A DNA stretch of 62,186 bases, the filler included, from Platydemus manokwari (taxonomy: Eukaryota): the NCBI GenBank assembly GCA_037951405.1. It is 6 parts of 6 records of this genome, joined end to end, with 100 filler letters (N's around TTAATTAATTAA, not from the genome) between each part and the next. Parts side by side here need not be neighbours in the genome. Positions count along the whole stretch, not along the records: positions 10,621 to 20,771 come from JBBMOY011163102.1; 5 more parts are not named here. One strand, 5' to 3'. Within the stretch, counting starts at the first letter, position 1, and every line of letters begins with the position of its first letter. The translations under genes and the position numbers were made by a program. Below are positions 15,324-19,879 of this stretch, piece after piece. Below the pieces are notes generated by a model, which worked only from the letters and a program-made list of their open reading frames with translations, was not told the DNA's origin and ran no database searches.

Positions 15324-16753
15324 ATGGAAAATCTTAAAAAACGTAATTAATTTCGATTTGATTTTTTTAACAAGTGAAAATTTCCTTTCATTTAGAAAAT
15401 GAACTCGCCGAAAAAAAATTATCAAAACATAATCTTCCAAATAATGCCGAAATTGTGCATGTTCGTGATTGGTTTCCAGTGTTTCATAACGGTTATTACG
15501 CAATCATTGGATTCAGATTGGACAACAATAAATATATTATGAGCGAACCCATCATCTATGTCTATGATTCTGGACGAGTTATTAGGTGTCCTCGAAAATA
15601 TTATGTTTTGGAAGGCGATATTTCGATAAAAACGTTCGACATGTTTGATTTGAATAGCCAGAAAGATTTACTCGATTTGCTGGAAGGCTTTGCCAAGAAA
15701 ACATTTGAAAATGGGTTGTTTTCGGATTGGATTGAGTGCATTTATCGATTGAATGGCATGATTATTGCAATACGTGAAGTGTAAGCGTTGTAATGGAGCT
15801 AATGTTTGTCAACTTTTAATGAGTTCAGATTTTTTCTGAAACACGAGAACCGATTCAATGAATCATTGAATGAGATTGTCAATCCCTCAGCTAATTATTA
15901 TTGCACGCTGGTGACTGACAAAATGGAAAACATCAAAATTAGTTTGAAGGAAGTATTTAATTCGATTTGTGTAAATTAATTTTTATCTGTTATTGATTTT
16001 GTGATTTGAATTCTTTTCAGACACAGAAACCGTGGAAGGCCGTATTGATAAAAGCATTAAAATCAAATGGCTATCAAAACCTAATTCCGGTATTTATGTT
16101 TTATTTAATTTTTGTAATTTTTTTAAAATTTTTTAGAATAGTTTTTTTTTATTTTTTAAAATATTTTTATAATTTTTAAAAATGTTTACTTAAATTTTTA
16201 AAATGTTTTCTTAATATTTTAAAATATATTTTAAATTTTTTAAAATATTTATTTAATTATATGAATTATTATCAATGTATTGATTTATTTGTTTTAGGTT
16301 GTCAAATCATTCGAGGTTTATCGATTTAAGTGAGGGAATTCATTTTGAGAAGATATTGATTAATCTATTGAATTTTTTAGAAAGAAACCGATAAGAGAGG
16401 TAAAAGATTTCACCATTGTCTATTTGTGGAGTGCGGAAAAGGATAAAACATCCGGTGATTATATTCTCCATGGTTACATTTACAATGAACAGAAAGATTT
16501 TGTTAAATTTTCTTCACCGATTCGTCAAGTTTTCGATGAAGCCACATCACTTGAAACGAAATCTGGATTTGTTAAAATATTTGGACCAATGATGATGATG
16601 AAATATGAACAATTCTACAACATTGAAGTCGTTCAATATGTTGCCATTGATTTTATTCATTCGTTTCTCAAAGGATTTCCGAAATATTGGAGTCAGTTTT
16701 TAACAATTATTGATCTGGTTCTATCAATGGATATCGTGGCGAAAAGTTCTTAA
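15324..16753 (+). CDS. 339-aa protein with two tandem SANTA-like domains (KNL2/M18BP1-like)
   Basis: Exons 15324-15342, 15396-15780, 15829-15970, 16021-16089, 16298-16329, 16381-16753; all GT-AG, phases consistent, 1020 nt. Domain 1: VHVRDWF...IIGFRLD...SEPII...YYVLEGDI...FENGLFSDW. Domain 2: VYLWS...LHGY...FSSPIRQVFDEATSLETKSG...IFGPM...FLKGFPKYW. Both follow the SANTA pattern (xW...G...SxxI...LxTxxG..Y.LxG...FxxGFPxxW). An alternative exon-3 donor at 15953 is also in phase. Confidence 0.8.
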
Positions 16754-18724
16754 ATGTATGTGTGTCGGTTTTGTTATATATGAGTGATTGTGTTTTTATG
16801 GGTAATGGATTGGTTTTTGTTGAAGGGCTTAACCTTTAACAACAAATATTTACGCATCTTTAGAATTTGTAAATTTCAATTTGATTTGTTTAATACAACT
16901 TATTTTTCAATTGAGTTTGTGTTATTTATTTATTATTAAAGATGTTTTTTCAAGAATTTCAGTCATTAATTATTTATATTTAAACTTATTATTTTTCCAC
17001 ACACTTACTTATCTGAGAGAAGAAGATTCTGTCGTGAAAAAAATCGTAACATTCAGCATTGCCATCATTTTGTTATTAGTTTCTAATTCTCTCTTATTGT
17101 GATCATATGACAAAAAATCTCGATTTTCTTTAACTTATTTTATAAAAACCTTCCTGAAATTTTGGAATGATAATAAACACAAAAGAAATTAATTTAATGA
17201 TTTAATTAAAACAAATACACAAAAATAAAGAAAAATTAATTTATGAAATTCAATAATGAAATTAGAACAATTATGAAAAATAATTAAATAAATTATCGAT
17301 TCGAATGATTCTATAAAAGAATTTTTTTATACCAACCAGAAATTAATTCTCAGTTATGAACGATATTTTTCATAACCAAAAATTGATATTTAATGAATGA
17401 GATAAAAAAGCCGACACCAGACTTGGAATATTAGAAGTGGAAATAATTTTTCAACTTATAATTGCATATTAACGTTTTGAAATCTATATAATTCTAAAGT
17501 ATAACTATATCTAAAGGAAATCTTTATCAACAAACCGGGGTTTAGTTATCAGAGCTTTTCTTCGTTGGTTAAATTTTTAACTGATCCTAATCTGATCAAC
17601 TTGTAGTAATTTGTCTTTTTGAGATTTTTTGAATAAAATGATAATTTTTAGCATTTGATTAGTAGGAAATGTCAGTTCCTCAAGCTACCAAATACATATA
17701 CGCAGACAAAGTGAATGACTGGTAAGTTAAAATCATTTCAAAATTCTAAATTTAATTCTCTTTATAAAAAATTTATAAAATTAAATAAAATTCGTAAAAA
17801 TAGAAAAACTATTTAAAAATATAAAAAAATGGTCAAGTACAAACCATTTAAACTTTTAAACCCCCTGAAAAATCTAAAAAACATGACACGTTTTAAGTCT
17901 CGTTTGTTGTTTATATTATAATTGGTTATTTTGATGATCATTGTCAACGTCTTACCCAATCAATAGAGTTCGTTTGACACCAGGTAATAATTAGTTCTTG
18001 AATTAATGTTCTTTATTTGCCTCGACGTACTCAAAACTATATGTGGATAAGTGGAACGGTGTAGGTAATGGCTTTATTAAACGCATTTTATCACTGCCTT
18101 CAAAAGTGTTTTAATTCTATTATCTAAAACTCTATCAGTCTCTATTCCTATTTATTTTCCAAATACTCCTAAAAGGTTTTGAATGACAGTGAGATATTTA
18201 TTAATGAATTTAAGGATCCTAATGACCTACTGCGAAATGATCAACAAGACCAGTTTCTATGATAAAAGTTTTATGACATTTATCAAAGTAATACAAAACC
18301 AATACTTACATGCAACTAATAATTTTACACTACACTATACAAGTAAACGATTGAATTTATGTCTAACAATTCTAGGTAGCAGATCGTCGTTTCAAGGTAT
18401 TTAGCTCAGTTCGATAAATCTTGAGAATATAAAGTATATATATCTATATTTAATTTTACACGAACCTCTTTCACTTATTTGTTCACAGATTGGCAATGTA
18501 GAAGTATTACTATTCTATTTCTTTGGCATTGCAGTGCGCATAAAATTTTAAAAATTAAAAATAAAAAAATTGACTTGACTTTGGCAAATTGATCTTGATT
18601 AAATAGTCTTTTCGGATATTGTAACGGTTAAGGTAAAAACACTAGTTGTGAGCAGCCTTGTATAATGATTGGTAAGTCAAGGAAAATAATGAAAATAATA
18701 ATGAAAATAAAAGTGAAATATTAA

Positions 18725-19165
18725 ATATAGACACCGATTCATACATTATAAATGCTAAAACAGAAGATATTTATGAAGATTTAAATAATGATGAAGAATT
18801 AAAGAATGAATTTAATTATATAACACAAGTAATGATAAAAAGGTACTTGGAAAATTTAAAGATGAATTAAATGGTAAAATTTTAGCACAATGAATAGCAA
18901 TTAGATCTAAATGTTATTCAAATAAAATTTTGAATAATCAATCTAAGACAGTTAAAAAAGCATTGAAAAAGAACTAATTAAAATGATAATGAATATGGTT
19001 CTATTTAAAAATTGTTTATTTAATGATAAAGTAAATCGTCAAAATGTTATAAAAATAAATTCTAATAAACATGATAGTTAGTTATCAAAAATTAATAAAT
19101 TAGCGTTACATAATCTTGATCAGAGATATATTTGTGATGATGGAATAAAAATTCTTCCATTTGAT
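18725..19165 (+). mobile_element. Polinton/Maverick (adintovirus-like) protein-primed family B DNA polymerase, degraded C-terminal fragment
   Basis: YIDTDSYIINAKTEDIYEDL, KKVLGKFKDELNGKIL, IAIRSKCYS, FKNCLF, KINKLALHNLDQRYICDDGIKILPF match pPolB motifs YxDTDS, GKFKDE, LRSKxY and KxALxxxDDKRYI..DG..TL. Contains stops and frameshifts. Confidence 0.88.
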
Positions 19166-19316: not shown

Positions 19317-19879
19317 TTAAATTATTTTCCTTAATCTTCTACGTAAATCTTTAATAATATCTTTAGTTTTAATAATCTCTTCATCAGTCAATATATTATC
19401 CTCCGAAGCTTTTACTTGGGATAAATATAATTTATCAATACCATGTTTAATCGCTTCACAAACTTCCCTATAAATCTTTTTCTTTTTACTACTAAAACCG
19501 ATATGAAATGATTCTCCGAAAACAGATTGTATTATTGTAAATAAACTAACTCCTACACTACTATATAAATTAATTATAAGTAAAATTCCAATAACCGAAA
19601 GAGTTGATAAAATAGTTGTTAATATACCTAAAATTCCATCAGATGTTATAAAAAGTACTTTAGACCACTATCAAATTTAGTCTATTTACTTTTTAATTTA
19701 TTATAATGACTCAATAAGTCTTCTAAAAATCTTTTTTTATTCAAAAAATTTTCAATTCTAAGCTTGTTAATGTTTACCTTTAATGTATCATTTTCATAAC
19801 CTAGATAAGATGGGCCAATATTTTGAGAATCTGGATTATTAAAATTATCAAGAGTGGGATAAAGTTTTTGATCTTCCAT
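19317..19879 (-). pseudogene. Disrupted Polinton-associated membrane protein ORF, convergent with pPolB
   Basis: MEDQKLYPTL...HYNKLKSK*TKFDSGLKY, then a frameshift into two hydrophobic stretches (GILGILTTILSTLSVIGILLIINLYSSVGVSLFTIIQSVFG), SKKKKIY, and IDKLYLSQVKASEDNILTDEEI. Intronless, and adjacent to pPolB. Confidence 0.6.

Follow-up and report, generated by a model that had tools for sequence, protein, structure and literature searches.

Introduction

To date, the SANTA domain has been linked to no family other than KNL2/M18BP1, where it has been described as a module present once per protein, and an extended peptide has been proposed as its ligand (PMC12953894). In human M18BP1, the SANTA domain is the single indispensable determinant of localization, being essential for centromere recruitment, and an exposed Trp-His pair of this domain, W413/H414, is needed for that recruitment (PMC12953894). 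Human M18BP1 reaches centromeres only when dimerized, and artificial dimerization bypasses MIS18alpha/beta (PMC12953894). A SANT/Myb domain is carried by many KNL2/M18BP1 members, though not by all. Here we describe a predicted spliced gene at positions 15324-16753 of a 62,186-nucleotide (nt) stretch of joined Platydemus manokwari records (assembly GCA_037951405.1; hereafter, the window). Its product, referred to as the window protein, ends in a SANTA domain (domain 2) and begins with a second module (domain 1) that resembles it, so that a compact protein with two SANTA-like modules is highly probable. All analyses of the locus were performed on the approximately 10-kb piece of the window that holds these positions.

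Results

A SANTA domain at the C-terminus

The translated sequence of 16382-16750 matched the Pfam SANTA profile (PF09133) at 24.6 bits (E 3.4e-5) over profile positions 6-91 of 92, the gathering score of this profile being 21 bits. The C-terminal domain of P0002, a relative of 276 amino acids (aa) found in UniParc, likewise exceeded the cut-off (24.5-25.7 bits). Among language-model clusters, the nearest named ones to domain 2 were plant SANTA (0.77) and chordate 'Mis18-binding protein 1' (0.76), both with weak scores. Two motifs have been published for SANTA, the N-terminal VxLxDW and the C-terminal GFx7FxxGFPxxW (Zhang 2006, via PMC9210943). FLKGFPKYW of domain 2 fits the C-terminal FxxGFPxxW, and the N-terminal motif is degenerate (TIVYLW), with W kept and D not. 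Domain 2 is a SANTA domain.

The initial annotation of this locus had read the SANTA residue pattern in both halves of the protein, quoting three strings from domain 2 (FSSPI, LETKSG, FLKGFPKYW) and one from domain 1 (GLFSDW). All four are present. The pattern was borne out by Pfam for domain 2; for domain 1 it is supported by profile comparison, motifs and a structure model, but not by a match to the canonical profile.

Similarity of domain 1 to domain 2

For profile comparison, the domain-1 family (A1) consisted of the window protein, P0002 and a further relative, P0001. The SANTA reference was the in-family domain-2 family (A2) and not a broad SANTA alignment, because the searches for relatives yielded no canonical SANTA sequences. 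By hhalign, A1 matched A2 with a P value of 1.7e-4 and a probability of 49%. The real score of 30.1 (P 1.5e-4) was reached by none of 300 column shuffles of A2 (mean 12.4, standard deviation 2.6, maximum 22.8), and the reversed alignment scored 14.4. Reciprocal tests were made with hidden Markov models (HMM). The domain-2 HMM scored P0001 at 19.9 bits, against 10.2 bits for the top of 2000 shuffled decoys, and the domain-1 HMM scored domain 2 of the window protein at 14.4 bits, against 11.9 bits for the top of 2000 decoys. With the domain-2 HMM, domain 1 of the window protein (7.4 bits) and that of P0002 (5.0 bits) stayed within the decoy range. Direct comparison of domain 1 with domain 2 by BLASTP was not significant (E 0.15), and it paired SEPI...YYVLEG with SSPI...FVKIFG, a register that SANTA would predict.

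When the five domain sequences were aligned by MAFFT, they were collinear from end to end, with W25, G32, G38, I52, G73, G106 and W111 invariant. Both the W near the N-terminus and the G-x4-W near the C-terminus were invariant, with a W-to-W spacing of 86 residues for domain 1 and 87 for domain 2. The VxLxDW motif is better kept in domain 1 than in domain 2, reading VHVRDW, VTVRDW and IKIRDW across the three relatives. The C-terminal motif of domain 1 is altered: it reads GFx4FxxGLFxxW in the window protein, and only G-L-x3-W is kept in the three relatives. The initial annotation had taken this change as a sign of subfunctionalization, which is speculation. These observations altogether show that domain 1 resembles domain 2, and that the similarity is more than chance.

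Structure models of domain 1

In the SANTA crystal structure, three helices come after two small sheets, and the third helix is the longest (PMC12953894). Domain 1 was modeled by AlphaFold2, and its own three-sequence alignment gave six strands and then three helices, at a predicted local distance difference test score (pLDDT) of 47.5. This order agrees with the description of the crystal (PMC12953894). With a merged five-sequence alignment, which includes two Pfam-positive SANTA rows (domain 2), the pLDDT reached 74, with values of about 90 over residues 20-80. The top match of this merged-alignment model in the PDB was 9r6h, the M18BP1 SANTA domain. In the ESM Atlas it matched M18BP1 SANTA clusters; one match had a template modeling (TM) score of 0.80 by target and a root-mean-square deviation of 2.2 A over 67 residues, and another aligned 86 residues to a 936-aa M18BP1. 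The merged model is compatible with a SANTA fold of domain 1 and is not independent proof of it. The SANTA nature of domain 1 is supported by its similarity to domain 2 together with this prediction.

A probable single gene with two domains

In the open reading frame (ORF) list, the locus appears as two separate ORFs on the plus strand, as the initial annotation had stated; one spans 15374-15784 (136 aa), the other 16424-16753 (109 aa). All GT donors and AG acceptors near the junctions of that annotation were enumerated, and two six-exon models without stops were obtained, of 334 and 333 aa, with intron 2 as the sole difference. The 333-aa model, in which intron 2 uses a gtaagc donor and a ttcag acceptor, is preferred. 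The six-exon layout proposed initially was recovered, but its length of 339 aa was not reproduced. Throughout the 333-aa model (Table 1), the frame was open and each junction was GT..AG. Introns 1-5 measured 53, 48, 68, 208 and 51 nt, with a T-rich acceptor tract in four of the five. Introns as short as these are typical of nematodes. As a whole, the piece has a very high AT content (G+C about 18-38% in 400-base windows), and intron 4 (16090-16297) is AT-only and visibly repetitive.

P0002 was collinear with the spliced model, with domain 1, NRxNE[ST]xxEIVxPxANYY, LIKxLKS and the C-terminal SANTA domain in the same order; it starts just before domain 1 and stops just after the SANTA domain. 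The exon of domain 2 has no in-frame ATG upstream of its middle, and for this reason it cannot stand alone. The collinearity of P0002 and the lack of an early ATG in the domain-2 exon together support a single two-domain gene. The two-domain layout is common to the window protein and a relative, and the spliced gene structure is open and conserved.

Two exons are less certain than the others. Exon 1 is needed only because an ATG must be supplied, exon 2 itself having none in frame, and it represents the sole GT/AG combination that gives an ATG and a frame into exon 2. P0002 lacks a counterpart of exon 5 (16298-16329), and an alternative acceptor at 16383-16384 bypasses it, giving a five-exon product of 321 aa that is equally stop-free.

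Linker and missing modules

The two modules are separated by a linker of about 80 aa, shorter than the approximately 100 aa estimated initially. The linker is basic (isoelectric point, pI, 9.7), and domains 1 and 2 are acidic (pI 5.9 and 5.6). Both linker motifs are kept between the window protein and P0002, though the identity of the domains is only about 40%, and these two stretches may be functional peptide motifs.

For SANT/Myb, no match was found in domain 1, domain 2, the translations of exons 3 and 4, or P0002. None of the downstream plus-strand ORFs of at least 45 aa was Myb-like, and the one tested (18676-18867) had no Pfam match; in agreement with the initial annotation, an extra 3' exon coding for SANT was not seen among them. 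[quoted passage not shown] A pattern of this kind, with an Arg anchor 8-9 residues before an aromatic-Trp pair, was not found in the model or in P0002. [quoted passage not shown] The overall architecture of the initial annotation, two SANTA-like modules without a SANT/Myb or CENP-C-like motif, agrees with these results and is common to P0002.

Relatives of domain 1

Among 1.84 billion representative proteins, phmmer with domain 1 detected only two relatives, P0001 and P0002. The exon-2 region was 48% identical to P0001 (E 3.6e-31) and 42% identical to the N-terminus of P0002 (E 2e-27). P0001 is a 135-aa ORF on L001, a genomic contig of 962 bp from another organism. The homologue of exon 2 on this contig (L001:446-853) starts after an ag acceptor with AAAATGAAC..., as in the window, and has a gtgagt donor at its end, so that the boundaries of exon 2 appear to be conserved between the two organisms. 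The coding sequence of L001:446-853 is much more G+C-rich than exon 2 of the window. A word-indexed collection of 5.8 billion gave nothing beyond the query proteins P0001 and P0002 themselves, a scan of JGI metagenome contigs gave no relative, and P0002 is on record in no contig.

A full-text search of the literature found no paper on a double, tandem or duplicated SANTA architecture or on a second SANTA domain, in line with the initial annotation, in which the characterized members were said to have one SANTA. Databases would list such proteins as single-SANTA, because Pfam misses domain 1. We infer that this small and rare gene derives from KNL2/M18BP1, is restricted to a lineage and evolves fast.

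Neighboring sequences

A probable two-exon gene lies on the minus strand at 19320-19879, composed of an ATG-started 65-aa ORF (19682-19879) followed by a 116-aa frame (19320-19667), the latter with hydrophobic, probably membrane-spanning stretches. Pfam gave no match for the product of 19682-19879 or of 19320-19667, nor for the other neighboring ORFs tested. Rfam and tRNA scans of the 10-kb piece were empty.

Table 1. Exons, domains and linker motifs of the two-module gene (333-aa model; positions along the window)
Feature	Position	Strand	Description
Exon 1	15324-15342	+	19 nt including ATG; donor AAC/gtaatt; least certain exon
Exon 2	15396-15780	+	Holds all of domain 1; ORF; homologues P0001 and P0002 N-terminus
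Exon 3	15829-15952	+	First part of linker; collinear with P0002
Exon 4	16021-16089	+	Linker; collinear with P0002
Exon 5	16298-16329	+	32-nt micro-exon, uncertain; good splice sites ttttag/ and /gtgagg; restores frame
Exon 6	16381-16753	+	Domain 2 and TAA stop
Domain 1	15446-15778	+	Divergent, SANTA-like; residues 17-127 of translated 15398-15778; VHVRDW, SEPI, YYVLEG, GLFSDW
Linker motif NRxNE[ST]xxEIVxPxANYY	15848-15901	+	Common to window protein and P0002
Linker motif LIKxLKS	16045-16065	+	In exon 4; common to window protein and P0002
Domain 2	16427-16696	+	SANTA by Pfam PF09133; FSSPI, LETKSG, FLKGFPKYW

Discussion

On balance, we consider it probable that the locus encodes a compact two-SANTA derivative of KNL2/M18BP1 with bivalent binding to centromere or chromatin. 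One gene would give a protein of about 320-335 aa, in which two modules of SANTA fold are joined by the basic linker. The N-terminal module would be an old and strongly diverged duplicate of the C-terminal SANTA domain, and the whole protein a pared-down member of the family. Each of the two modules could offer a weak surface for binding a ligand associated with chromatin or centromeres, and this ligand is probably an extended peptide. With two modules per chain, binding would be bivalent and based on avidity, a property that human M18BP1 gains only by dimerizing on MIS18alpha/beta. Taken alone, the two-SANTA-like architecture is well supported and very likely correct, and the centromere and avidity mechanism is a tentative suggestion about which we are rather doubtful.

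Several observations weigh against this proposal and are taken together here, beginning with domain 1. The Pfam test, from which the initial annotation had expected two separate SANTA matches, gave the one in domain 2 (24.6 bits) but none up to E 10 for domain 1 of the window protein, P0001 or residues 1-125 of P0002. The language-model neighbors of domain 1 included no SANTA, and PDB sequence searches with domain 1, both as single sequences and as profiles, gave no match. The AlphaFold2 model from its own alignment was poor (pLDDT 47.5), and fold searches with that model gave no SANTA match, the results being meaningless. The fold-search test suggested initially thus led to 9r6h with the merged model but to no SANTA with the domain-1-only model, and the structural match is partly circular because it depends on the added domain-2 rows.

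These results would fit a single-SANTA protein whose N-terminal half is an unrelated domain of beta-plus-alpha type, SANTA-like only by chance or convergence, and the hhalign probability of only about 50% and the score of window domain 1 within the decoy range point the same way. Against this stand the profile-profile score far beyond 300 shuffles, the two reciprocal HMM tests that beat all 2000 decoys, and the full-length collinear alignment, in which the W, G and G-x4-W anchors are invariant and the spacing matches. A VxVxDW motif is also present in domain 1, and even the domain-1-only model follows the order of six strands and three helices seen in the SANTA crystal (PMC12953894). We regard a chance resemblance as very improbable, and we keep the reading of two SANTA-like modules.

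As to the gene itself, no run on record as RNA was found to contain the locus, exons 1 and 5 being predicted only, and P0002 may itself be an automatic prediction. The model could then be incomplete, the SANTA part belonging to a longer canonical KNL2/M18BP1 gene whose SANT/Myb, CENP-C-like and disordered exons lie outside it; exon 1 is tiny and predicted, and the characterized KNL2/M18BP1 proteins are long. The frame, however, closes at TAA after a complete third helix, the downstream plus-strand ORFs described above were not Myb-like, and the CENP-C-like pattern was not found. P0002, moreover, ends just past its SANTA domain and starts just before domain 1. A truncated view of a longer gene seems highly unlikely to us, and the compact two-module gene is preferred.

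With respect to function, the human sequence, presumed to be in the register WHSxxI, would place W413/H414 opposite KFSSPI or HFSSEI in domain 2 and IMSEPI in domain 1. In domain 2 the two positions would presumably then read K-F or H-F, and in domain 1 they would read I/L/F-M, a lead rather than a test. The M18BP1 sequence used here was cross-checked only by the residue numbers E420, R421 and S431 given in PMC12953894. The ligand surface of human SANTA is probably not conserved here, as far as this motif register goes. We infer the origin by duplication, the avidity mechanism and any centromere function. The initial annotation had offered two candidate roles, that of a rewired licensing factor for centromeres and that of a SANTA-only paralog that has taken on a new role.

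The protein could instead be a SANTA-derived paralog with a non-centromeric role in chromatin, a canonical KNL2 being encoded elsewhere in the genome. In most metazoans, SANTA is encoded by only one gene (PMC9210943), and the restriction of SANTA to KNL2/M18BP1 noted above (PMC12953894) also argues against such a paralog, which we consider rather unlikely. A bivalent centromere or chromatin binder of KNL2/M18BP1 descent is still the explanation that we favor.

A more daring extension of this explanation is that the protein is a natural 'cis-dimer', a licensing factor cut down to two SANTA readers, in which bivalency within the chain replaces the MIS18alpha/beta scaffold and makes it dispensable; we think this improbable. 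A minimal protein made almost wholly of two SANTA modules would in any case put the valency idea to a compact, natural test, and could be used as a convenient bait for the SANTA ligand. Such architectures would go overlooked, annotated as single-SANTA.

The architecture is a variation on the KNL2/M18BP1 family. Compared with human M18BP1, the window protein is short (about 330 aa) and has two SANTA-like modules; the other M18BP1 elements were not detected, and the W413/H414 pair appears not to be conserved. Human M18BP1 itself is a protein of about 1100 aa in which a single SANTA domain is accompanied by SANT/Myb, an N-terminus that binds MIS18, and pre- and post-SANTA motifs (PDB 9R6H; PMC12953894). 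Plant betaKNL2 is, like the window protein, a SANTA-bearing KNL2 variant without the CENPC-k motif and without SANT/Myb (PMC9210943, PMC13294675). Unlike the window protein, it carries only one SANTA domain, located at the N-terminus, and its C-terminal region is longer; no close sequence relationship between the two was detectable. KNL-2 of C. elegans is also a SANTA-family protein, from a lineage without Scm3/HJURP (10.1101/2020.12.28.424576). In contrast to the compact two-module protein described here, KNL-2 is long; besides its one SANTA domain it has a Myb domain, and the CENP-A tail is bound by a disordered region in its middle.
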